The position numbers were made by a program, and so were the translations under genes. Shown piece by piece: positions 1 to 53,528 of a stretch of DNA of 64,000 bases. The DNA comes from Kudoa neothunni (taxonomy: Eukaryota; Animalia; Cnidaria). The stretch lies in contig OZ199838.1 of the NCBI GenBank assembly GCA_964304625.1, positions 481,059 to 545,058 of the forward strand. Direction: 5' to 3'. The stretch's first letter is position 1. Every line of letters starts with the position of its first letter. The notes under the pieces were generated by a model that was not told the DNA's origin, did no database searches, and saw only the letters and a program-made list of their open reading frames with translations.

Positions 1-72
1 GTTGAATTCCTCCACTCATATCGATACAAATTTAAACAAAATATTTTTTATTAATTTACAAATAGTAAGATA

Positions 73-3000
73 ATGATGATGAGATTATCTTTACGACAAC
101 GAATCACTTCTACAACATACCTGGTCATCTTCACTCGTATTTTTCTTTGAGATTATATATATATTAATCGTTATTAGTGTTTTTTGCAAACAATGTGATC
201 TCTGATAATATTGATAATAATATAATGAAAGTTAATTTTTCACATAATAAAGAGAAATATATTATTTCAATTTCTGGATATGATATTGAGAATAGCTTCA
301 GACATTGTGCCCTCCAATACTATGGACAAACTAAGGAAGCAATTAGCTTCGCCTCTAAATGTGCTACGGACATAAGTGGTGCAAAATTGGATCAGAAATT
401 AAATATGTGTACTTACACATGTAAAAAAATTGAATTAAATCTGAATGGTACAGAGTTTAAAACAATCAAATTTTTAAAATGGTGCCAAGGTATGAATGAG
501 AATGATGTAAAAAAATGCACAACCAAGAGAGTTTTTGCCATAAAAAGTATAGCAACATATATCATATTATTTAATATAGAAAAATAGATCTTTACATAAA
601 GAGTTCGTTGACTGCAACCAAAACGAATGGTACGTTCACTATTTCAGTTCGAAGTAAAGAAAGCCGTGGTTTGATTGTCAAAGACATTCCTGCTTCAAAA
701 GTTAGCCAAGAATCATCACCTGAATTTTATACAGCCAAATCTATTACACTACCTTCTAAATCATATCAACCTACGTATGTGATTGAAGTCGATCAAAAAA
801 CGCCAGCAATTTTATTGAGTCCAAAAAACATTAATGAGGATTGGTTTATTGCTACTGGATCAAAACAAACCCACATTAATAATTATTATACAGTTACGCT
901 CCAAAATCCGAAACCTTCTCAAATTTGTTACTTTGGAATAAAAAATATTAATGACTCTCATTTTTCCTCTAGTTGCTCAGCTATGAATCGAGCTGGACCC
1001 TGTTTTCAACCTTGTTATAAAGCAACTTTGTATCATGATCAAATTTTTGATTTCGCTCAAGTACTTGTAAAACCCCTAGACAAGATCATATCCAAAGAGT
1101 TTATTCAAACTATAACATGTAAATTGTAATTTATCTGTTGTTTTTTATCGATTCTATAGTCTGTTGCAATCAACCCACTGTTACTGTAACTGGAAAGAAT
1201 GGAGCGACCTTAGCGTTAACTAATCTAAATAAAAATAAAGACACCAAACAAGCTGTAGAGGGAGCGTCTATTGTAGAAATCAAAATAATAGAGAAAAATC
1301 TGGGAATTAACGATAATTGGGAAAATCTCCCGTGCAACGGAGAATGTAACAGTTTTCAACCGATAACTTTGAGCTTGCTTGTACCACTAACAGAATACAT
1401 TTTAAAAGTTAAAATAAAAGGACTTGAAACATTAGATTCTATCGAAGTTAATTATTATCACCGTTATTTTTATTTCAAAACTGAAGGTACCGATAAATAT
1501 TTACTCTATATCTATAATTTCTATTAGGGGATAACTTAGCAAATAATGGTCCTTTTACGCCAGGCAACACCCCTGATCAACATAATAAACTAACCCTAAC
1601 CCTATCGAATTCATTTACCGGCGAAAACATTAATAACGAAATATGTGATCTCTATTATTCAGTCGCTGAAAGTGATTCACAAATATATCCTGCTACATGT
1701 GAAGAAGGTAGAGCTAAAAAATTTTGTTCTGGTACTTGTAATAGCCAGTTCTATATAATAAATCTTGATCCTAAAACAAACTACAAAATAACTGTTTGCC
1801 CGAAAGGATATAACTGCATTACAAGCGTTACGGTGCCGAGTAATTTATTTATGGAATATAAGAATAATTAATTTAAATAGCTAGCGGAATCGATATAACA
1901 ATAGCCATATCGGAAGTTGATGGGCAAAAGAAAACTAAAGCTACAGTAACTGCTGCAGGTAAAGAATTGGGAGCTTCATGGGCGTACGTTTTACTGGAAC
2001 AAAAATCTAACAAAATTATCAAGGATTGTTTGAATGGCGGTTGTCAACCTGCTGTAACGAATGAAGCTAACACAATAGATTTATTATGGGATTCTCTCGA
2101 CTCCGAAGTTGCATATCAAATAGTGGTTATAAATGAAGAATACTCTAAACCAACAGATAAGAAAATAGAATGTAATTGCTCTTTTGTATAAATAATAATT
2201 TTATATTTTTAGCTGGTATTGAGGAAGGTGATCAGAAAATGATTCTATATTTCAATAAGCTAGAACAAGGGTACAAAGTTAAGTTCATAGATGATAAACT
2301 AACTAGTAAGAAAAAAAAAACTTACACGGTAAAAAAATCTAGTAATGACCTTTTGAGTTACGGAAATGCTGGAAAAACTAACTTAGTAATTACAAAACAA
2401 TGCAATGAACTTACATCATTTTTCGACATTGATCCTCATAGTCAGAATAAACCAAATTATATTTCCGTCACTTATTTGCACACTAAAGCTGATAATGTAG
2501 ACAATCTTCAAAAATCGGCGATTAAGAAAGAAATTATTGCGAAATCGCAATCAGTTAACGGAATCCTGCTTTCAGGAAGCAGCAATGCGGACGAGCTACT
2601 TATAGGAAATAACGGCGACACAGGGGTGATAACAAATCCAAAAGCATTACGTTCATCATCTGAAATAGAAAAACAGACTAAAACAACGACAAAAGACGTC
2701 CCTTTTAACGTAGGAAAGGTCTATTCATACTACATAGGTAATATTTAACTTTTTTCTGAATTAAATCATTTTTTGAAGATCATTACGAAGAAATTACCCA
2801 CACAGCTAAATTAGAAGACGACAATATAAAATTGGGTATAAATAAATGCTCATTAAAATGCAAATCATTCAAGGATACCAAAGAACAAAATGTTGTGAAG
2901 CAACCACAATCTTGCGGCACTCATGATAAAGTTGAAAGTTATTCGATTCAATTTGATGAATTAGTTAAAGATTATTACATAAGCTGCCCAGAATATTTTG

Positions 3001-6000
3001 ACTTCCATTATTTCTATGACAATACATTTGTTAAAAATCAAGCTCCCTTTTTCAGTAGATTTTATTACGAATTAAAAAATGTTGAACAAAAAGATACATT
3101 TACAGTTCAACTTACAAATCCAGAGCCGTCTGAAATGTGCACATTCGAATGGATAGACGCCACAGCATCAGCTTCAAACAGTTTTTTTTCGAATGAATGT
3201 AATAATATGGAAAATTGTTTTCTCAGTAGGTGCAACAGCTACAAATTTGGAAATGTGCAGCCGAGTGTAAAGGCGGTTAAAATAAGGGTGCTAAAACTAG
3301 GAATGAAACCTACTATCGGCTATCAAAATAATATACACATACGTAAGATTTAGATATATATTTAGTAAATAACACAAAATATTTTAGTGAAACATGGTGA
3401 CGATGTTCCTGCGACAACAGTTGAAAATAATATTCAAATAAACATTAAGGGGAAAGATAAAAACGAGGTTGGCCAGGATGTCAAACCAACTGTTATATGC
3501 TCCCTAAAGTTTTGGAATACATACGCTCCATTAGTTTCCGAAACTGGAAGGAAAGAGGTGAATAATCGATCAACCGATTGTAACTCTGAGGAAGTTAAAA
3601 TTACTCCTGAACCAACTCATTTACATAATGATATTATGGTAACCATAACGGGTATACCTAATTACTCGCCAAGAAAATATTTTTTCCATAAAATAGGTAT
3701 TTGATAAAATTAGACGTTATTTTAAATATTTTTTCTGCTCAAGGAAGCCAACAACTTTCCATTCCAGAGTCTTCAATCAGAACTAATGCAAATGGAATCA
3801 CAATTAACGAAAATTCAGAGGCTCCAGAAAATATTTGTACTATCTACATAAAAGAGGAAAGCGATTTATATTATCCTGCAACTTGCTTGGGAAATGTGTT
3901 GTGTGTAAAATCGTGCAAATTAAAGTTCGAGATCATTAGACTTAACTCCCATACCACGTATGCTCTCAAAATTGTCCCTAGTGGAGCTTACGAAACTCTA
4001 ATTTTTAATAATAAAAAAACCAGTAATAGTCATTATTTATATATTTAATGAGTGAATTAATAATAAATAGTTGGTAACGAAATTGAATTTGTAATTTCAA
4101 ATAATTCCGAGAAGAACAAGCTCATAATACAAACGAAGCAACCTTTGGATAACGCAAGCGATACAAAATGTTACTATCAGTTATATAAACATGAATCAAA
4201 TGAAAGTATTTGTATCATGTTACCTTTATTATCATTAAATAGCTTCACCTACGAGAATAATGAAGTCCTGCATTGATTGTGTTAATGAGGCTGATGTTAT
4301 AAAATGCAACGTTATTCAGTTTGATCATAATACATACAGTAGTAAGTATAACTACAGGATAATGATTTATGCGGACAAAAATTCGTCATCATTCAAACTA
4401 TCGATACCAGGTAACATTTACAGAGAAGTTTACATTGACATACATTTATAGCTTTTATTCGACGTGGAAAACTTGAACAAAAGTTTATAAAATCCTCGGG
4501 TGCAGAAGCTGAGAAATTTTCAGTTACATTGAAAGATTTTTCAGCGACTAAGTGTGTGATAAAAATCGCTGATTTTAGGGAAAATGCATTTAGCAAGCCA
4601 CAACTCTGCACAGGTGATAATGGTGATTGTTTAGTGAACTGCAATGAGAATGAGTTTGAAGTCGGATACATTAATTCAAAAGTTTATCGATATATATCAG
4701 TTTGTTACGGCGCAGACGACGCAGAAGCCAGAAGATGTAAAAAGATGCAAGTGTTCCCAATAATAATGAGTAATTAAAAATAATAATATTTATATAATAT
4801 AGTTTTCAACAATATTTTTTTATAGATTACAAACAAGATAACACTTATGCAATATCTTATGCTGCCGGAAAAGTTAGTTTCTCTTACAAATCAAACTCAA
4901 TAACTGAATGGAATATACAATATGACGGGAAGGATGATCCACAGAGTGACACAGAAAAGACCAAAATAAAAATCGAAGCTAATTCTGAGACTCCACAAGT
5001 TAAATCATCGTCTCTCCCACTTGATAGATACATAAGTTATTATAATGTCAGTTCAACACTGTTATGGCCTGGAATATTATATTATATGAATAATAGTTAC
5101 GTGAAATCTGAGACCCCCCTAAAATCTCAGATCATTTATTCTGTTTCAAGCGTTGTTGATAACAATAGAAACCTTCAGATTAAATTCTCTCCTGGTCCAT
5201 ATAATGACGAGATTTGTCACATCAAAGTATTTAAGGTAAGTGAAACTGACGTAGATCAAGAACCTAAGATTCTGAATGGATGCACTGGAGAGAAAAAAGA
5301 GTGCTTTCAGCTTTGTCAAGATGGTATCATTAGCTTGACGGAAGAAGGTGATAAAGTTGGAATAATTGTAAAACGAAGGTTTGATACCTCTGGATTCAAA
5401 CAATACTTTAAAAGTAGTATTGGATTCAACTTCAAAAATAATATCTTATAGGAAATGACAATGGCATAAATATAAGCAACATTAAGGATACGGAAGTCAC
5501 TCTTACCGGACTTGACGTCTATAAGCGTATGAAGACTGATGGCAATACTTCTGAATGTGCAATTAAAATACGCCTAGCAAATACTTTTTCGACTGAAAAA
5601 AAAGCTGAATGTAAGGAAAATGGTGAATGTAGTGCTGGCTGTGAAGGGTCATACACTATTAATAACCTTCAGGCCGATACAAATTATGTAGTTTCTGTCG
5701 CCATAACTAACATTGGAATTACTGATTATATTAAGAAAACAACATTCCGAACAAGTAATAGCATATTTAAAACATTGAAGTTTAACAATACATTTAGCTG
5801 AGGGAGGAACTGTAGCCGCCAAGGTTTCAAAACAAAACATAAAGAATTCCACTGCTACAATAACACCATTTGAATCTGAAAATCATTTTTCAGTCTGCAG
5901 AATATATGTTAAAAAAAATGGGACCTCAGATCCAAAATATATGGCTACGTGTGACGAAATAGGAGCATGCGAGAACAAATGTGATGTTGAGTTCAGAATA

Positions 6001-6995
6001 GTCAACCTAGAATTAGGAACTACCTACAAAGTGACCGTCGAACCATCTGATGGCAAAAAACAAAAGGAGTATTCCATTGAAACAAGTATTCCAAATCTAT
6101 CAGCTTGTTTAATTATTTTTTATAGTAAATGGTACTATTTCAATTAAGCATTCGTTGTATGGAGAAAGTGACTTGACAATTGATGTGCGTTTCGAAGGAA
6201 AAGATAACAATTCAAAATGTCCATTTATGATTCAGGAAAAAATAGGAGACAATCAGGAAGGGAAAATTGTTACATGGTGCAATGATGATGAAGAATGCTC
6301 TGCCAATAAGTGTATCATTAACATCAATAACTTGTCGAAAGGAAAAGATTACATATTGAAATTAAAAGCAAAGGATTACTCACTCTATAACAAATATATA
6401 ATTCAATGTAAACATATTTTGTTTAAACTATTAAATAATCCTTATTGTTTCATAATATATTTTGCGAAGACTCAAGAATAGGTGAAATGAAAGGGTAATT
6501 AAATTCCAATTATTTACCATATAAATAAAATAATTTATTTAGTGAATTAAATAAAAAATCCTTATGGAATAAAAAATTTATAGGAGGAGAAAATATAAGG
6601 AGTGAGTATGCTAACATTGTAGTAGATAATATTGTTCAGAAAGTAATAGAAAAGGTTGAGAAAGGGTAAAAACAATTGTTCATGTCATATTTATAAAATT
6701 ATATTTAGTAACATTATTTTAATTTAATGATCTGATAAAAAAGAAACATTGTAGATAGTAAAGAAAACCACAATTTCGATGCTGCAAAGAATAGTTATTC
6801 GTAATTTACATTTATATTTTCGAGTTTTACATTAGATAGGTCTGTTGGAAGTTACATGTAATAGAATATACATATTTGTTGTAGATAAGCTTTCTTAGAT
6901 TATATGCAATGATACCCATCGTGGTTTCACTTTTGGTAATGATAGGTATAGCTGTTTACAGAAGGAATTCTGAGGACGTTTCTTACGATCTATAA
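73..6995 (+). CDS. Large type-I membrane protein with tandem Cys-containing FN3-like modules, paralogue 1 (22 exons, ~1,970 aa)
   Basis: Manual exons: 73-136, 178-546, 588-1118, 1160-1486, 1528-1839, 1881-2171, 2213-2737, 2779-3342, 3388-3696, 3744-4022, 4071-4205, 4243-4410, 4452-4769, 4826-5413, 5452-5754, 5798-6085, 6126-6407, 6470-6493, 6584-6664, 6755-6800, 6840-6857, 6899-6995. They join into one frame with GT-AG introns (two of them nested). N-term MMMRLSLRQRITSTTYLVIFTLFFANNVIS is signal-like. Repeats end in FN3-type motifs (INLDPKTNYKITV, NNLQADTNYVVSV, VNLELGTTYKVTV, LLVPLTEYILKV). C-term YILYAMIPIVVSLLVMIGIAVY-RRNSEDVSYDL*. Confidence 0.85.
6494..6583 (+). other. Candidate nested twin intron ([D1,2] type) no. 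1, paralogue 1
   Basis: aaag|G[gtaatt..tttag 6495-6542]tgaatt..tttatag|gagga. Same layout at 10448-10536 (-) and 33342-33432 (+). Confidence 0.6.
6665..6754 (+). other. Candidate nested twin intron ([D1,2] type) no. 2, paralogue 1
   Basis: aaag|G[gtaaaa..tttag 6666-6708]taacat..ttgtag|atagt. Same layout at 10277-10366 (-) and 33514-33604 (+). Confidence 0.5.
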
Positions 6996-7489
6996 AGTCC
7001 ATGATACATTCATCATTCATTACATCAATTACCTATATTATTATAAAATTTAGTAAACAAATTTGTTATTAATTATTTAAAAATTATATTTGAATATTAT
7101 ATTTATAGTTGATAATGATTAGAATTTTTCATATTGAACTTGATTCATTTTTATCTAAACCTATATAAGAGCTTTAAAAACATACATTTTGCGCATCATT
7201 TCTTAATTCTTATTTTTTAATCCTTTTGTGCCTAATGTTCATTAAAAATTTAAATGAACAAGAGAAAAAATTACATTTACACGATTCTCTATTTTAATAT
7301 TTTCTCTGAAATAGGTTTAAAATGTTATGGTAATTATTATCTATTTAAAAACAAATTAACAATTTTTATGGATTATAACACTAGAATATGTATTCAAAAA
7401 ATTGACATGGCGCCGTTTTAAAGAATGTAACTTATTTCCATGCATTATCGTAATTAATTCAAATAAAGGTTTTTGTCAAATATATTATA

Positions 7490-10035: not shown

Positions 10036-13000
10036 TTATAGATCGTAAGAAACGTCCTCAGAATTCCTTCTGTAAACAGCTATACCTATCATTACCAAAA
10101 GTGAAACCACGATGGGTATCATTGCATATAATCTAAGAAAGCTTATCTACAACAAATATGTATATTCTATTACATGTAACTTCCAACAGACCTATCTAAT
10201 GTAAAACTCGAAAATATAAATGTAAATTACGAATAACTATTCTTTGCAGCATCGAAATTGTGGTTTTCTTTACTATCTACAATGTTTCTTTTTTATCAGA
10301 TCATTAAATTAAAATAATGTTACTAAATATAATTTTATAAATATGACATGAACAATTGTTTTTACCCTTTCTCAACCTTTTCTATTACTTTCTGAACGAT
10401 ATCATCTACTACAATGTTGGCATACTCACTCCTTATATTTTCTCCTCCTATAAATTTTTAATTCGATACATTGTTTTAGTGAATTCACTAAATAAATTAT
10501 TTTATTTATATGGTAAATAATTAGAATTCTATCACCCTTTCATTTTATTAATTCTTGAGTCTTCGCAAAATATATTATGAAACAATAAGGATTATTGAAT
10601 AGTTTAAACAAAATATGTTTACATTGAATAATATATTTTTTATAGAGTGAGTAATCCTTTGCTTTTAATTTCAATATGTAATCTTTTCCTTTCGACAAGT
10701 TATTGATGTTAATGATACACTTATTGGCAGAGCATTCTTCATCATCATTGCACCATGTAACAATTTTCCCTTCCTGATTGTCTCCTATTTTTTCCTGAAT
10801 CATAAATGGACATTTTGAATTGTTATCTTTTCCTTCGAAACGCACATCAATTGTCAAGTCACTTTCTCCATACAACGAATGCTTAATTGAAATAGTACCA
10901 TTTACTATAAAAAATAATTAAACATAAGCTTATTGATTTTGAGTACTGGTTTGAATAGAATACTCCTTTTGTTGTTTTCCATCGGATGGTTCGACGGTCA
11001 CTTTGTAAGTAGCTCCTAATTCTAGGTTGACTATTCTGAACTCAGCATCACATTTGTTCTCGCATGCTCCTATTTCGTCACACGTAGCCATATATTTTGG
11101 ATCTGAGACTCCACTTTTTTTAACATAAATTCTGCAGACCGGCAAAAGATTTTCAGATTCAAATGGTGTTATTGTAGCAGTGGAATTCTTTATGTTTTGT
11201 TTTGAAACCTTGGCGGCTACAGTTCCTCCCTCAGCTAAATGTATTGTTAAACTTTAATGTTTTAAATATGCTATTACTTGTTCGGAATGTTGTTTTCTTA
11301 ATATAATCAGTAATTCCAATGTTAGTTATGGCGACAGAAACTACATAATTTGTATCGGCCTGAAGGTTATTAATAGTGTATGACCCTTCACAGCCAGCAC
11401 TACATTCACCATTTTCCTTACATTCAGCTTTTTTTTCAGTCGAAAAAGTATTTGCTCGGCGTATTTTAATTGCACATTCAGAAGTATTGCCATCAATCTT
11501 CATACGCTTATAGACGTCAAGTCCGATAAGAGTGACTTCCATATCCTTAATGTTGCTTATATTTATGCCATTGTCATTTCCTATAAGATATTATTTTTGA
11601 AGTTGAATCCAATACTACTTTTAAAGTATTGTTTGAATCCAGCGGTATCAAACCTTCGTTTTACAACTATTCCAAATTTATCACCTTCCTCCGTCAAGCT
11701 AATGATATTATCTTGACAAAGCTGAAAGCACTCTTTTTTCTCTCCAGTGCATCCATTCAGAATATTAGGTTCTTGATCTACGTCTGTTTCACTTACCTTA
11801 AATACTTTGATGTGACAAATCTCGTCATTATATGGGCCAGGAGAGAATTTTATTTTGAGTTTTCTATTGTTATTAGCATCGCTTGAAACGGAATAAATGA
11901 TCTGAGATTTAAGAGGAATTTCAGATTTCAAATAGGTATTATTCATGTAATAGAATATTCCAGGCCATAACAGCGTTGAACTGATATTATAATAACTTAT
12001 GTATCTATCAATTGAAAGAGCGGCAGATTTATCTTGTGGAGTCTCAGAATTGGCTCCCATTTTCAAGCTGGTCTTTACTGTGTCACTATATGGATCATCC
12101 TTCCCATCGTATTGTACATTCCAATCAGTTATTGAGTTTGATAAGTAAGAGACATTAACATTGCTGTCAGTATAAGATATTTTATAAGTGTTATCTTGTT
12201 TGAAGTCTATAAATGTTATTTACTCTTTAAGTAAAATATATTTTTTAAATACTCATTATTATCGAGAAAATTTGAACTTTTTTACACTTTTTGGCTTCTT
12301 TTTTGTCTGCGTCATAACAAACTGATATATATCGATCAACTTTTGAATTAATATATCCGATGTTAAGATCACTTCTGGTGCAGTCCACTAAACAATCATC
12401 TATATCTACGTCTTCGCAAAGTTGTGGTTTATTAAATTCAGTCCCAGCGAAATTAACTATTTTTATTACACAGTTATTATTATTAGGAAAATTATAAAGT
12501 TTAATTGAAAATTTGTCAATTCCTTTATCCGAAGATGACATATACTTCATTTCAAGTTTTCCACTTCGAGTAAAAGCTATCAATGTATGTCAATTTTAAC
12601 TTCTGTGTAAATGTTACCTGGTATCGATAGCTTTGTTGGCGATGATTTTTTGTCTGCATAAATCATCAACCTGTAGTTATACTTATTATCGTATATATTG
12701 TCAAATTCAATTTTGTTGCATTTTTTAATATCAGCACCTGTATTACAATCAATGCAAGACTTTATTATTCTCGTGGGTGAAGCTATTTGAAGATAATAAA
12801 AATAATATGACGTTACTACCTTCATCTGTTTCGTGTCTATATAACTGATAGTAGCATTTTGTATTGCTTGCTTCTTTGAATGATTGTTTTATTTGTATTA
12901 TGAGCTTGTTCTTCTTGGACTGATTCGAAACTTCAAATTCAATTTGTTCATCACCTATTGATTAATTACTCATTTATTTATTTATTCATTCATTCATTCA

Positions 13001-29900: not shown

Positions 29901-32900
29901 AGATTTTATTACAAACTAAAAAATGATAAAAACCCTGATTCATTCACAATTCAATTGGTTAATCCAGAGCCATCTGAAATGTGTACGTTCGAATGGATTG
30001 ACGCCACAGCATCAAATTCAAACAGTTTTTTTTCGAATGAATGTGATAACACGGAAAACTGTTTTTTCAGTATGTGCAACAGCTTCAGATTTGGAAATGT
30101 GCAGCCGAGTGTAAAGGCCATTAAAATAAGGGTCCTAAAACTAGGAATGAAACCTACTATCGGTTATCAAAATAATATACACATACGTATGATTTTGATA
30201 TATTTAATAAATAACACAAAATATTTTAGTGAAACATGGTGACGATGTTTCGGTGACAACCACTGGAACAAAAATTAAAATCGATATTAATGGGAAAAAT
30301 AAAAACGAAGATGGTGAGGAAGTTACCAGCCCAGCTGCTACATGCGCGGTAAGGTTTTGGAACGCGTACGCCCCATTAGTTACTGAAACTGGAATGAAAC
30401 TTGTGACTAATCTATCGTCGGATTGTAACTTTGGGGAGATTCAAATTACTCCTGTCCCAACTTATTTACATTATGATGTTATGGTAATCATAACGGGTAT
30501 ACCTAATTACTCACCAAGAAAATATTTTTTCCATAAAATAAGTATTTAGTCAGATTAAAAATTCTTTTAAATATATTTTCAGCTCAAAACGAACAAATTT
30601 CCATTCAAGATAATTCAATCTCTCCTAATTCAAATGGATTCACAATTACCCCAACTTCAGTAACTCAATCAATAATTTGTACTATCTACATAAAAGAGAA
30701 AAGTGATTTATATTACCCTGCAATTTGTTCATTAAAGGAGTTGTGTGTAAAACCGTGCGACTCAACGTTCGGCATTATTGGGCTTAACTCCGATACTTCT
30801 TATGGTCTCAAAATTGTTCCTAGTGGAGCTTATGACACTCAAATTGTTAATAATAAAAAAACAAGTAACAACCATTATTGATAAGTTTAATAAGTGAATA
30901 AATATTCAATAGGCGGTGAAACAATTGAATTTGAAATTTCAAATCAGTCCAAAAAGAACAAGCTCATTATACAAGTGAAACAATCATTCAATGGAGCAAG
31001 CGATACAAAATGCTACTATCAGCTATATAAACATGATACAAACGAAAGTAATAATGCCATATTTATTTTTACTATCTTTAAATAGCTTCACCCACGAGAA
31101 TAATAAAGTCTTGCATTGATTGTACTAATGACGATGATGTTAAAAAATGCGATGATATCAAGTTTGATAATGATATTTACGATAACAAATATAACTACAG
31201 GTTGATGATTTATGCAGAACAAAAATCGTCACCTTTCAAACTATCGATACCAGGTAACATTTACAAAGAAGCTAAAAACTGACATACATTTGTAGCTTTT
31301 ATTCGGCGTGGAAAACTTGAACAAAAGTTTATAAAATCTTCGGTGGATGATGTTGAAAAATTCTCAATTACACTAAAAGATTTTCCCAATACTAATAAGT
31401 GTGTAATAAAAATGGCGAATTTGGCAGGAACTACATTTAAGAAGCCACAACTCTGCACAGACGTAGATGAAGGTGATTGTTTGGTGGAATGCACCAAAAG
31501 TGATCTTAATGTCGGATATATTAATTCAAAAGTGCTCGATATATAACAGTTTGTTATGGCACAGACAACGCAGAAGCCAAAAGTTGTAAAATGGTTCAAG
31601 TATTCCCAATAATAATGAGTAATTAATAAGAATAATATTTTGATAATATAATTTTCAACGATACTCTTTTTAGATTACAAACAGGATAACACTTATGCAA
31701 TAACTCATACTGACGGCGAAATTAGTTTCTCTTATAAATCAAACTCAAAAACGAGTGGAATATACAATATGACGGGATCGATGATAAACACATCGGTACA
31801 CAAAAGACTTTATTAGCTATATCAACTTATTCCGAGACTACAGATGTTAAAACTGCTTTTCTCTCGATTGATAGATACATAAGTTATTACAATATCAGTT
31901 CAACACTGCTCTGGCCAGGAATATTCTATTACGTGAATAATACTTACTTGAATTCGGAGATCCCTCAAAAATCAGAGATCACTTATTCTTTATCAAGCGT
32001 TGCGAATAACAATAGGCAACTTCGGATAAAATTCTCTCCTGGTCCATATAATGACGAGATTTGTCACATCAAAGTATTTAAGGTAGATGAGAATGGAGCA
32101 GATCAAGAAAGTAATGTTCTGAATGGATGCACTGAGGAGAAAAAGAGTGCTTCCACCTTTGTCAAGATGGTGTTATCAATTTGACAGAAGAAAGTGAGAA
32201 TATTGGAATAATTGTAAAACGAAGATTTGATACCGCTGGATTCAAACAATACTTTAAAAGTAGTATTGGATTTAACTTCAAAAATAATGTCTTATAGGAA
32301 TTGACAGTGGTATAAATATAAGCGATATTAAGTATACGGAAGTCACCCTTACCGGACTTAATGTCTATAAGGATATGAAAGCAGGTTCCTCTGCTTCAGT
32401 GTGTACAATTACAATACGTCGAGCAAATACTTTTTCGACTGAATCAAGGGCTATTTGTGATAATAATAACCAATGTGACACTAGCTGTGAAGAGTCGTAC
32501 ACTATTAAGAGGCCTTCTCGCCGGCACAACTTATGTAATTTCTGTAACAGTAACCAACATTGGAATTATCGGGTACACAAAGGAAACAACATTCCGAACA
32601 AGTAACGGAAAATTAAATGGTCATATGTTAACAATTTATTCAGCTGGAGGAGATGAATTAACGGCGGGTGAATCAGAATCTACCATAAAGAATTCCACTG
32701 CCACAATAACACCATTTGGATCTAATAATTATTTGCCGGTCTGTAGAATTTATATTAAAAAAAGTGGAGTCTTGGATCCAAAATATATGGCTACGTGTGG
32801 TGGAATGGGAGCATGCGAGAATAAATGTGATGCTGAGTTCATAATTGTTAACCTAGAATTAGGAGCAACCTACAAAATAACCGTCGAACCATTCTGATGG

Positions 32901-33845
32901 CAAAAAGCAAAAGGAATATTCTGTTAAGACAAGTATTCCAAATATATTAGTATATGTTTAATAATATTTTTTAGTAAATGGTGCTATTTCAATTAAGCAT
33001 TCGTTGAACGGAGGTAGTGATTTGACAATTGAAGTCGGTTTCACAGGGAAAAATGACAATTCAAGATGTCCGTTTATGATTCAGGAAAAAATCGGAGACA
33101 ACGAGGAGGGGGAAATTATTACATGGTGTAATGATGATGAAAAATGCTCTGCCAATAAATGTACCGTTAACATCAATACTTGTCGAGGGAAAAAGACTAC
33201 ATTTTGAAATTAAAAGCAAAGGATTATTCACTCTATAACAAATATAGTATTCAGTGTAAATATATTTTGTTTAAATAATTAAATAATCCCTATTGTTTAA
33301 TGATATATTTTACAAAGATTCCAGAATTAGTATAATTAAAGGGTAATAAAATTCTAGTTATTTATTACATATTTATAATTATTTAATTTTAGTAAATTAA
33401 ATAAAAAAACATATAGAGTTAAAAATTTATAGAAGGAGAAAACATTAGGAGCGAGCATGTCAACATTGTAATAGATGATATCGTTCAGAATGTAATAAAA
33501 AGGGTTGAGAAAGGGTAAAAACAATTTCTTATGCCATATTTTATAGTATCATATATAGTAAAATATAAATAATTGAATGATCTGAAATATAAGAAAAATT
33601 GTAGATAGTAAAGAAAATCGCAATTACGATGCTGCGAAGAATAGTTATTCGTAATTTGCATTTATATTTTCAAGTTTGACATTAGATAGGTCTGTTGGAA
33701 GTTACATGTAATAGAATATACACATTTGTTATACATAATCTCTTTTAGATTATATGCAATGATACCCATCGTGGCTTCACTTTTGGTAGTGATAGGTATA
33801 GCTGTTTATAGGAAGAATTCTAAAGACATATCTTACGATCTATAA
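26978..33845 (+). CDS. FN3/Cys-repeat type-I membrane protein, paralogue 3 (six single-base frameshifts in the 3' third: assembly error or recent pseudogene)
   Basis: Same exon layout. Starts MMMRLSLRQRYTSTTYLVIFTLLCTKNVIS and ends RKNSKDISYDL*. Indels relative to the paralogues at ~31533, 31752, 32142, 32508, 32893, 33178. Confidence 0.75.
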
Positions 33846-50661: not shown

Positions 50662-53528
50662 CCGTTACAGGACGGTGTTCGGAAAATGTACGTATGTTCC
50701 GGTGTGGGGCCCGCGCGGACCCCAGCGATTATTTCATTATGTAAGCGCAATTTTTATAATAACTAACATTTTATGATATTACTATATTATAAAGATACGG
50801 AAACAATTATTATTTGGTTGAAACTGTCTATATAGTTTTGTAAAAAATGGATAGATAAGCAGAATTTTCTACTGAAGGCAAAGCTTCACAAAACCACTGT
50901 GACACTCTCGCATGACACCGATAGGCAGTATAAAATAGCTCTTCCATGACAATGATTAAGACATTCAGTAGCATTGTTTGTATTCGAGAATATCTAAAGG
51001 ACCAGTTAGTCACGCCTAATCGCGGACGATTATAATTATAATAAAATTGTTATTTGTTAATAAACATAGAAATCACATAATATAATATTTTTATTAATAA
51101 AATATTACATTGATTTTATTTATATACCAATAATAGAATTATTTATTCGCTATAAAATAAAAAACTTAAATTTAAACTTGTAAGCTTCAATTAATCATCG
51201 ATACATGTAAAATCCTCTAAAATTGATATCCGTATCTATACAGTACGTTTATTTGGTCTGAGTATTTTTTCACCTTGAAGACATTTTTATTTCTATGTGA
51301 TTTTAAAATTAAAAAGTAATACGAAATATTAGCTCGATATTTTTTAGATAGTTTCATTAAAGTCAATTCAACAAAATACAATAAATAAAATCATAAACGA
51401 CGGCGAAATATTTGTTAATTTAATAAATATTAAATTTTAGAACGATTATTTTGCTAAAATATAATGAAAATTTGTGTTTATTTTAGTTTCTGTTTTTTAT
51501 AAGAAAATGTTAGAATAATTATGAGAAATTTGTCTGAAATTTTAAATTAAAATAAACCATATATAAAATTCAAACTGTTGTTATGCTGAACAACCATTGG
51601 TTTGAACACGTCGAAAAGTTATGAAAAAACTATTTCTATTTTGAAAATCTTTTTAAAATACGTATATAATTAAAAATATTTTTTATAATGCAGCAAAAGA
51701 ATGAGCCAATTTAAAATAGATTTAACTTTCGTTAGACAGGATAATAATTCAACAATAAACCAATCATTCGAATCATCTTGACAGTCTCGGAAAATGATTA
51801 TAATTTTCTGAATTTTATGAAGTGAGAAAATTGGTTTGTTACAAGATGAACATTTTGCTTTGGTTTTCCTGTCCATGTTACGTGGGCGGCATACGCATCG
51901 TCCTTTTTTAGATAATGTTGAATCATGTTGCATATTTGAATCCGTATTGTAAATCTGAATGGTACAAAGTAAAGGTTTCTTGATGACGCAATACGTTAGA
52001 GGTGACCAATTGAATCCCTAATTCTCGAAGGAAGGTTTGACGCAGACTGGGATCATTCGAGCGCCAATCAGGAAATCTGGTTGTCCATACATATAATATA
52101 TGCATTTAACGCAGATATATCGATCAGATCCATGAAAACACGGAATGTCCAACGATTGGTTCTTCTATAACAACCATAAAGTTTGGTCATCTGGTCTCCA
52201 TTGTCAACCGCCTCCTTTTGTGTGATAGTAATGAACGATAAGTTCAGGTCTTTTCTTATCACCTCATTCGATGACATCATCATGGAACTCTGTTGATAAT
52301 AAAATGACATCTTTGTTTTTCTTGGGAACATATGAAACTATGGTTAAGTCATCAGAGAAGCAAAACATTGAGGAATTTTCATCACGATCTTTCACACTAA
52401 GAATATTTTTTGGGATGTAAAAAAGTTGTCAGTCGTTATACCACGACGACTTCCATAATAAGGAGAAATTAAATCCTTGGCGACTAGTTCTCCTTGGTTT
52501 TTCTCTCTGATACCGTTAACTTTACCAAGGTAAGGTTGGGTATTTAATAGGTAGGATGTATCCACATCTGAAACCACCCACAACTTCATCCCGAAACGAC
52601 CGGATTTATTCTTCATGTAAATACGAAAAGGACACCTTCCGCGAAATAAAATCATTCTTTCATCTACAGTTATATGTGTACCCGGTGAATAATTCCGTGT
52701 GAACGAGGAATTTAAATCGTCGAAGATTTCTTGCATTGCTTCAAATTTGTTGTCAGATATGATCATGATTCCAATAAAAGACTTCAGCTCTACCATTGTT
52801 ATGGTAGCCTTATCGCTATATTTTTCATTCGATAGGCAATACTTATTGGTAAAATATAATATTTTTTCCAACACAATACTCGAAAAAATAGCGAGAATGT
52901 TTCCATAATCTTTTGTACATCTTTAGACTCTTCTGTAAGTCCAGATTTTGGCATGTCTAGATTGTGGCTTTTGTGTTTCCTCCTCATTTTTCCACTACAA
53001 CTCCACTTAAATCCAGTGCTGGAGTTAGAAATTTCCATCAAATTTTCAAAATCATCATAATCATCATTGCAATCTGAAATAGCAGTTAGCGGTCCCTCAA
53101 AATCAAGAACATTGTCGATTTCATCGTTCTCAACAGGATCACTTAATAAATCATCAGAATATTCTTTTGGTATCGCTCTAGTGGAGTTTAATTAAAAAAA
53201 AACCAATAATTTACTTATATTGTACACAAACAACGTGGATTTTAATTTAAACCTCTAATCCTTGAATATTCTATGGGTATATATATTTGTATTTGTCGGA
53301 CGATGATATAAAATGATAGAAATACATACATATTGATTTAAAATATAATTAAAGCACACATTTAATGAAGTTTCATTAATTATTTTATTTTACATATTAA
53401 TCTCAATTATAAAGCTAACTAAATAACCCCTTTATCAAAAACATGCACGAATGAAGTAAATTTATTTCGATTAATTTTAAATATAAAAAAATTAGGGCCC
53501 GCATGAACTCCACACCGTCCCGCGAGGG
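50662..53528 (-). mobile_element. Full-extent but decayed piggyBac transposon
   Basis: TTAA on both sides (50658-61, 53529-32). TIRs ccgttacaggacggtgt / acaccgtcccgcgaggg. Transposase fragments ITVDERMILFRGRCPFRIYMKNK, ITTDNFFTS, AVDNGDQM..RRTNRW and a C-terminal Cys-rich domain; frameshifted and internally deleted. Confidence 0.92.

Follow-up and report, generated by a model that had tools for sequence, protein, structure and literature searches.

The stretch of DNA analysed here, which we call the window, comprises 64,000 nucleotides of contig OZ199838.1 (positions 481,059 to 545,058, forward strand) of the Kudoa neothunni assembly GCA_964304625.1 and is AT-rich, with a G+C content of 30.2%. 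Kudoa neothunni is a myxozoan cnidarian and therefore an animal. Its assembly, obtained from a yellowfin tuna sample, has a size of 40.2 Mb, an N50 of 12.0 Mb and a G+C content of 30.41%, with a mitochondrial contig of 18,219 bp, and the RNA reads that mapped to the parasite were too scarce for annotation (PMC12239612). The window carries the 3' ends of one multi-exon gene three times, referred to in the following as copy 1 (plus strand), copy 2 (minus strand) and copy 3 (plus strand). The corresponding gene family, which is found at positions 1-7000 of the window (plus strand) and at approximately 65 genomic sites, is large and lineage-specific and encodes multi-domain proteins. Their last domain possesses invariant Cys and Trp residues (CPF..W C..C S.N.C); after it come a membrane anchor and a short tail with the terminal residues Y(D/E)L, which are conserved across all lineages. 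The only Pfam match is to fn3, and as this match is sub-threshold (21.2 bits compared to a cut-off of 25) we leave the family unnamed. A word-indexed search of protein databases with the last-domain exon retrieved no relatives, a search of 1.84-billion representative proteins with the same exon returned spurious bacterial MBG_2 repeat proteins only, and a 13-row family profile found no relatives in public protein collections. It is probable that the genes encode surface proteins of the fish parasite. All comparisons of conservation presented below are made between paralogues of one genome, that of Kudoa neothunni. Apart from the gene family, the window contains a decayed piggyBac-type transposase at positions 52050-52950 on the minus strand (PF13843, E = 1.4e-25).

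The features at the 3' end of copy 1 are collected in Table 1, along with the equivalent segments of copies 2 and 3. Between the microexon E1 and exon E2 of copy 1 the exon frames demand a net excision of positions 6494-6583, i.e. 90 nt which read GG..AG, and canonical GT-AG sites can achieve this excision in two steps only. The segment starts within a GGG run (6493-6495) and harbors an intron-like sequence placed between G6494 and T6543. Joining these two bases generates the sequence GTGAATT, which has the appearance of an ordinary splice donor, and once the resulting 42-nt outer intron is removed as well, phase 1 is regained. Directly after the 81-nt exon E2 a second segment of the same layout (x-G-GT..AG-T..AG) follows. 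We refer to the two segments as twin intron 1 and twin intron 2, to the embedded sequence as the inner intron and to the surrounding one as the outer intron, the latter being 42, 41 and 41 nt long in twin intron 1 of copies 1, 2 and 3, respectively. All coordinates and lengths that a first-pass annotation of this DNA had claimed for the three copies are correct, as judged by direct reading of the sequence. Further downstream, the last intron of the subfamily to which copies 1 and 2 belong offers two frame-keeping acceptors, yielding introns of 32 nt or 41 nt, of which other lineages favour the 41-nt version. An analysis of RNA structure at positions 6470-6600 gave no signal (z = -0.6).

Table 1. 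Features of the 3' gene ends in the window (positions are those of the window)
Feature	Position	Strand	Length (nt)	Remarks
Copy 1, last large domain exon E0	6126-6408	+		phase-1 end with T, before donor gtaaac
Copy 1, ordinary GT-AG intron before the microexon	6409-6469	+	61	37-66 nt across copies
Copy 1, microexon E1	6470-6493	+	24	phase 1 to phase 1; constant length
Copy 1, G, putative first base of the outer donor	6494	+		invariant in all parsed copies
Copy 1, inner intron of twin intron 1, GTAATT..TTTAG	6495-6542	+	48	family range 39-57 nt
Copy 1, outer-intron remainder, TGAATT..TTTATAG	6543-6583	+	41	with G6494, a 42-nt GT-AG intron
Copy 1, exon E2, GENIRSEY..VEKG	6584-6664	+	81	phase 1 to phase 1; purifying selection in the inferred frame
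Copy 1, twin intron 2	6665-6754	+		G6665; inner intron 6666-6708 (43 nt); remainder 6709-6754 (46 nt); G-GT..AG-T layout
Copy 1, exon E3	6755-6800	+	46	phase 1 to phase 2; AAKN motif used for the family search
Copy 1, intron	6801-6839	+		gene end
Copy 1, microexon	6840-6857	+		gene end
Copy 1, last intron	6858-6898	+	41	gene end; 32-nt alternative likewise in frame
Copy 1, last exon: membrane anchor, YDL tail, stop	6899-6995	+		gene end
Copy 2, twin intron 1	10448-10536	-		G10536; inner intron 10535-10488 (48 nt); remainder 10487-10448 (40 nt)
Copy 2, twin intron 2	10277-10366	-		
Copy 3, twin intron 1	33342-33432	+		G33342; inner intron 33343-33392 (50 nt); remainder 33393-33432 (40 nt)
Copy 3, twin intron 2	33514-33604	+		

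The exons that flank twin intron 1 allow the mature mRNA to be predicted. Exon E2 shows a dN/dS ratio of 0.19 in the inferred frame, compared to 1.05 and 1.99 when read in the two remaining frames, and its internal full-codon part is always a multiple of three, ranging from 75 to 87 nt (78-90 nt for the whole exon). The microexon E1 is 24 nt long and free of in-frame stops in 36 copies, which represent 27 distinct sequences and include synonymous variants. In all parsed copies the codon split between E0 and E1 reads T+AY and thus encodes Tyr, and skipping of the microexon leads to a stop in 27 of 35 copies. Taken together, the selection on E2, the length and frame of E1, the split Tyr codon and the stops caused by skipping lead to the prediction that the mRNA joins position 6493 to position 6584. 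With both twin introns taken out in the nested manner, all 35 copies have an open path that leads from E1 through the conserved membrane anchor and the Y(D/E)L tail to the stop codon. Splicing from the inner donor directly to the outer acceptor never results in an in-frame reading of E2 among the 35 parsed copies. For all three copies of the window this route (GT6495 to 6583 in copy 1) terminates after 6-7 codons, which bears out the stop that the first-pass annotation had assigned to it. Retention of the inner intron produces an immediate stop (GGG TAA). Read-through of the middle piece is in frame in 12 of 35 copies; among the window copies the piece is open in copy 1 only and contains a stop in copies 2 and 3, just as had been noted before.

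Copy 3 carries several 1-nt insertions or deletions in its upstream domain exons (32000-33300, plus strand), and its last domain exon is open over 28 codons only. It is thus probably a pseudogene, in which both twin layouts nevertheless persist. The earlier statement that the layout is conserved in all three paralogues thus counts one probable pseudogene among them. Copies 1 and 2 are arranged as an inverted pair and show 0-1 differences per 50 nt over positions 6150-6350 and 6650-7000. In the 170 nt which contain the microexon and twin intron 1 (6450-6620 compared to 10410-10580, minus strand) about 20 positions differ, and judging from its divergence this stretch looks like a conversion patch that may have come from another paralogue.

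An error in a homopolymer or in the assembly has to be considered. DNA contigs of two sequencing runs, which may be the assembly's own source, span positions 6493-6495 without insertion or deletion. The GGG run is present in these read contigs and recurs, at two sites per copy, in approximately 60 members of the family, so that this explanation can be dismissed, in agreement with the first-pass annotation, which had argued against a homopolymer slip. A loose contig end in the reads matches the AAAGGGTGATAG of copy 2, and one read-contig variant shows the substitution G6482A. The four sequencing runs in which the locus was found are DNA, and their contigs cross the introns unspliced; a search for the locus in two raw RNA runs filed under the same label returned zero reads.

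To evaluate how widely the layout is distributed in the family, we searched the genome with a 23-nt degenerate pattern derived from the exon after twin intron 2, which matched 45 places compared to 0 for a reversed control, 44 of the 45 being family 3' ends. A profile search with the last domain gave 67 places. The survey set consists of 64 fetched and parsed 3' ends plus one (L018) taken from an alignment, i.e. 65 in total. Twin intron 1 is found in frame in approximately 61 of these 65 3' ends, with the general form x-G-GT..(39-57 nt)..AG-T[AG]..(36-45 nt)..AG. As to the exceptions, L067 carries insertions of 1 nt in the microexon and of 2 nt two exons further on, in L077 all sequence past twin intron 1 is gone, L083 is without a usable outer acceptor and in L072 the stretch reads N. 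The layout of twin intron 2 is present in 35 of 37 parsed copies, with L043 broken by one extra G at this site. No resolved single canonical intron, as would result from the loss of one partner, was found at the twin position among the approximately 65 copies, and discordant canonical introns one base apart, which are predicted from the loss of either internal intron, are likewise not seen in the family. Since all copies derive from one ancestor, the two twin introns represent at most two origins.

Among 10 lineages the similarity of the intron interiors amounts to 0.56, compared to 0.53 for shuffled sequences, and is thus at shuffle level, although neither the G that precedes the inner GT nor the T that follows the inner AG ever changes. 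This extends to the parsed family copies what had been noted for the window copies, namely conserved G-GT and AG-T junctions with diverged interiors. In canonical introns of these genes, for comparison, position -1 is G in 16% and position +1 is T in 28% of cases. The exon bases on both sides are variable: E1 ends with G in 31, A in 2 and C in 2 copies, and E2 starts with G in 9, A in 22, C in 3 and T in 1. This variability rules out, as a general route, both the reverse nesting order, in which the acceptor rather than the donor would be disrupted ([A2,3]), and a reading of the segment as GT..GG. Both are possible in 9 of 35 copies, including copies 1 and 2, where the next exon starts with G and where, as correctly stated before, the [A2,3] order leads to the same mRNA. 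Position and layout are thus kept in 10 or more lineages, as is expected by comparative standards of a spliceosomal twin intron (stwintron) of the [D1,2] type, in which an internal intron separates the first and second base of the donor of another.

Next to its conservation, the quality of the individual splice sites can be assessed. The ordinary introns of the gene have a modal length of 41-42 nt, lie in phase 1 in 75 of 84 cases (junctions between long open frames) and follow the consensus GTA(A/T)(T/A) at the donor and (T/A)TA(T)AG at the acceptor. Position weight matrices were built on 69 canonical introns, and as these training introns are paralogous, the exon-side columns may reflect coding bias, which has to be kept in mind for the following scores: the rebuilt outer donor reaches a median of 7.8 bits in twin intron 1 and 7.6 bits in twin intron 2, compared to 8.1 bits for canonical donors, while the GT of the outer donor in its unspliced context scores a median of 1.1 and 0.9 bits, with 1.4 bits for all GT sites. 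Inner donors show medians of 5.7 and 7.4 bits (background median 1.4 bits) and inner acceptors of 5.2 and 4.9 bits (background median -0.8 bits). The scores of inner donors and acceptors thus fall into the range of canonical introns. The inner intron is therefore canonical at both of its splice sites and normal in length (39-57 nt), is located between the donor bases G and T, and leaves, upon excision, a canonical outer intron of 36-45 nt.

According to a recent study, only GTa is left of the donor signal in myxozoans (PMC13644364). In the Kudoa genome U1 starts with the canonical ACUUACCUG and U6 carries the canonical ACAGAGA. There are two U1 genes, which lie head to head at a distance of about 350 bp, and one U6 gene (L092:1501-1660; L094, reverse strand). 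A search of the genome for U12 snRNA gave no match, which constitutes a weak negative. Ordinary junctions between open reading frames in the window have a GT-AG solution in 49 of 58 cases, and the remaining 9 are not rescued by allowing GG. General use of a GG donor, which is needed by none of the 58 junctions, was accordingly rejected. When the intervals between long open reading frames of the window were scanned for nested parses, the sole match without a canonical alternative was a 105-nt segment at 52338-52442 (minus strand), which lies in the decayed piggyBac transposase and is taken as a chance occurrence.

With a probability of roughly 70%, we interpret positions 6494-6583 as a [D1,2] stwintron, i.e. 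a donor-disrupted nested spliceosomal intron that would be excised in two steps. In the first step, the ordinary 48-nt intron 6495-6542 would be removed, whereby G6494 meets T6543. The junction G|TGAATT would then serve as the donor of the second step, in which the 42-nt intron is cut to the acceptor at 6583, so that the end of E1 at 6493 is joined to the start of E2 at 6584 in phase 1. The same two-step excision would take place again 81 nt downstream, at 6665-6754. We infer both the stepwise nature of the reaction and the order of its steps from the arrangement of the sites; where the next exon has an initial G, as in copies 1 and 2, the reverse order [A2,3] would lead to an identical product. 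The family-wide comparison strongly supports the [D1,2] reading of the first-pass annotation, with the reservation that canonical in-frame alternatives exist at the expense of conserved codons. Those alternatives, along with two readings that do not rely on a canonical single intron, have to be weighed against the stwintron.

A single-step, non-canonical GG-AG cut before 6494 and after 6583, removing the 90 nt at once, would yield an identical mRNA, so that all arguments drawn from the reading frames fit it equally well, and G6494 would be constrained under such a model, too. What it leaves unexplained is the invariant internal AG plus T and the donor-like TRAWT within interiors that are otherwise at shuffle level, as well as the fact that both halves (39-57 nt and 36-45 nt) have the size of normal introns. 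Moreover, the lack of any need for GG donors at the 58 ordinary window junctions and the canonical U1 and U6 both speak against it. An equivalent GT..GG cut could apply where the next exon begins with G and is impossible in 26 of 35 copies. We thus regard a one-step cut as unlikely. For twin intron 2, a one-step in-frame option exists in many copies, albeit not in all, in which the inner donor is spliced to an AG located 4 nt past the outer acceptor. A second alternative, which the first-pass annotation had named itself, is one canonical intron of 105-108 nt that leads from GT6495 to an in-frame AG within E2 (6599 or 6602) and results in a protein without GENIR. Such an AG is available in 35 of 35 copies, which is explained by the codons of a conserved Arg (AGR) and a conserved Ser (AGY) that supply it. 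However, the bases that would be removed behave as codons: the motif [GE][GE][EQH][NQ]I[RK] is conserved, its spacing changes in threes, and the deleted stretch contains synonymous variants (AAC/AAT, ATA/ATT and Arg AGG/AGA/CGA). In addition, the site is purine-rich and weak and is preceded, at a distance of 16 nt, by the strong acceptor TTTATAG, and the intron would be 2.5 times as long as the modal intron. This alternative is accordingly on hand in every copy, is disfavoured solely by codon-type conservation as far as the frames are concerned, and appears distinctly improbable to us.

For one subfamily, to which copies 1 and 3 belong, a canonical intron could be envisaged that runs from GT6482 to 6583, measures about 102 nt and leaves 12 nt of E1. 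In 14 of 36 copies codon 5 of E1 (GGT or AGT) offers a phase-1 GT that keeps the frame, again at the expense of conserved codons, but it is absent from copy 2 and from all other lineages (22 of 36), is abolished by G6482A in the one read-contig variant, and does not account for an E1 that is 24 nt long and open everywhere; we therefore consider it very unlikely. It could also be argued that the 3' ends are spliced unproductively, with transcripts that stop or change frame at the twin introns, that the family forms anchor-less, truncated proteins and that the downstream exons are relics. The immediate stop caused by retention of the inner intron would be in line with this, as would the existence of broken copies (copy 3, L043, L067, L077 and L083). 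Yet purifying selection acts on the downstream exons (dN/dS 0.19) and the anchor and cytoplasmic tail are conserved in all lineages, which makes it equally hard to credit a relic status. We thus retain the [D1,2] stwintron as the preferred reading.

Stwintrons of the [D1,2] type have been described in filamentous ascomycetes, namely Aspergillus, Hypoxylaceae and Xylariaceae (PMC5639578, PMC9024468, PMC12403724). The stwintron literature that we searched deals with fungi only and contained no animal case, consistent with what the first-pass annotation had assumed; in some of the fungal papers, which were checked for this point, animals, Drosophila and recursive splicing go unmentioned. We regard the Kudoa twin introns as putative [D1,2] stwintrons in a new kingdom, the layout having so far been proven in fungi only. 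As in the fungal examples, an ordinary U2-type intron is located between donor bases 1 and 2, its removal would rebuild the donor, and each of the two partners is as long as a normal short intron. Also in common is the use of positional conservation across related genes as a means of verification without expression data (PMC9024468). The Kudoa case differs in its host, a myxozoan animal, in being predicted from the layout of the DNA, and in the presence of two such elements back to back, 81 nt apart. Furthermore, the Kudoa twins have been inherited within one family of about 65 copies, whereas fungal 'sister' stwintrons are similar in sequence and scattered at new positions. In Trichoderma reesei a DHA1 antiporter gene contains an alternatively spliced [D1,2]/[A2,3] stwintron (PMC5587772). 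It resembles copies 1 and 2 and in total 9 of 35 family copies in that the alternative internal introns share one G and lead to the same mRNA. Unlike in DHA1, 26 of 35 Kudoa copies have A, C or T as the first base of the next exon, and hence only the [D1,2] order works there.

Stepwise excision is also known from animals in a different form. Recursive splicing in Drosophila and vertebrates proceeds via zero-nucleotide ratchet points with the sequence AG|GT, which are located in long introns (10.1101/006163, PMC8605326, PMC10156609). Like the reaction proposed for the Kudoa twin, it removes an intron step by step and re-creates a 5' splice site after the first step. At ratchet points, however, both bases of the GT come after the junction, whereas the Kudoa segment shows AG|T with the G contributed from upstream, in a unit of only 90 nt. 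With the donor G coming from upstream, the upstream exon would be trimmed by one base. An assignment as a zero-nucleotide recursive splice site was thus rejected, the junction reading AG|T[AG]A without a G after the AG and the whole unit measuring 90 nt. The U2/U12 twintrons of insects and vertebrates, which consist of competing alternative introns for two types of spliceosome (PMC3564746), likewise comprise two introns at one position and, in contrast to what is proposed for the Kudoa twin, are not removed sequentially.

A regulatory role of the two consecutive twin introns can be imagined, although we consider it unlikely: they might act as a checkpoint, with four ordered splicing steps to be completed before the membrane-anchor exons are reached. 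The suggestion of the first-pass annotation that the membrane anchor is gated by obligatory two-step splicing is, likewise, purely speculative. If so, shortcuts, i.e. splicing from the inner donor to the outer acceptor, or removal of the 3' half first where the next exon lacks an initial G, would shift the frame and yield an anchor-less, possibly secreted form, and the parasite could tune the ratio of anchored to released forms of a large, variant family of surface proteins.

If confirmed by RNA, the [D1,2] stwintron of Kudoa neothunni would represent the first case beyond fungi of a nested spliceosomal intron with a disrupted donor, found in an animal whose introns are among the shortest known. 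It would mean that an animal spliceosome can run obligatory, ordered double excisions on introns of 40 nt, and it would provide a natural case of re-splicing that takes one base off the upstream exon. Introns that look like GG-AG, are twice as long as the modal intron and contain YAG-T offer a signature by which similar elements can be searched for in other compact genomes. Gene predictors that accept GT/GC-AG introns only will truncate or mis-frame all of the approximately 65 genes of the family, and the membrane anchors are therefore likely to be missing from current annotations of this family in a commercially relevant tuna parasite.
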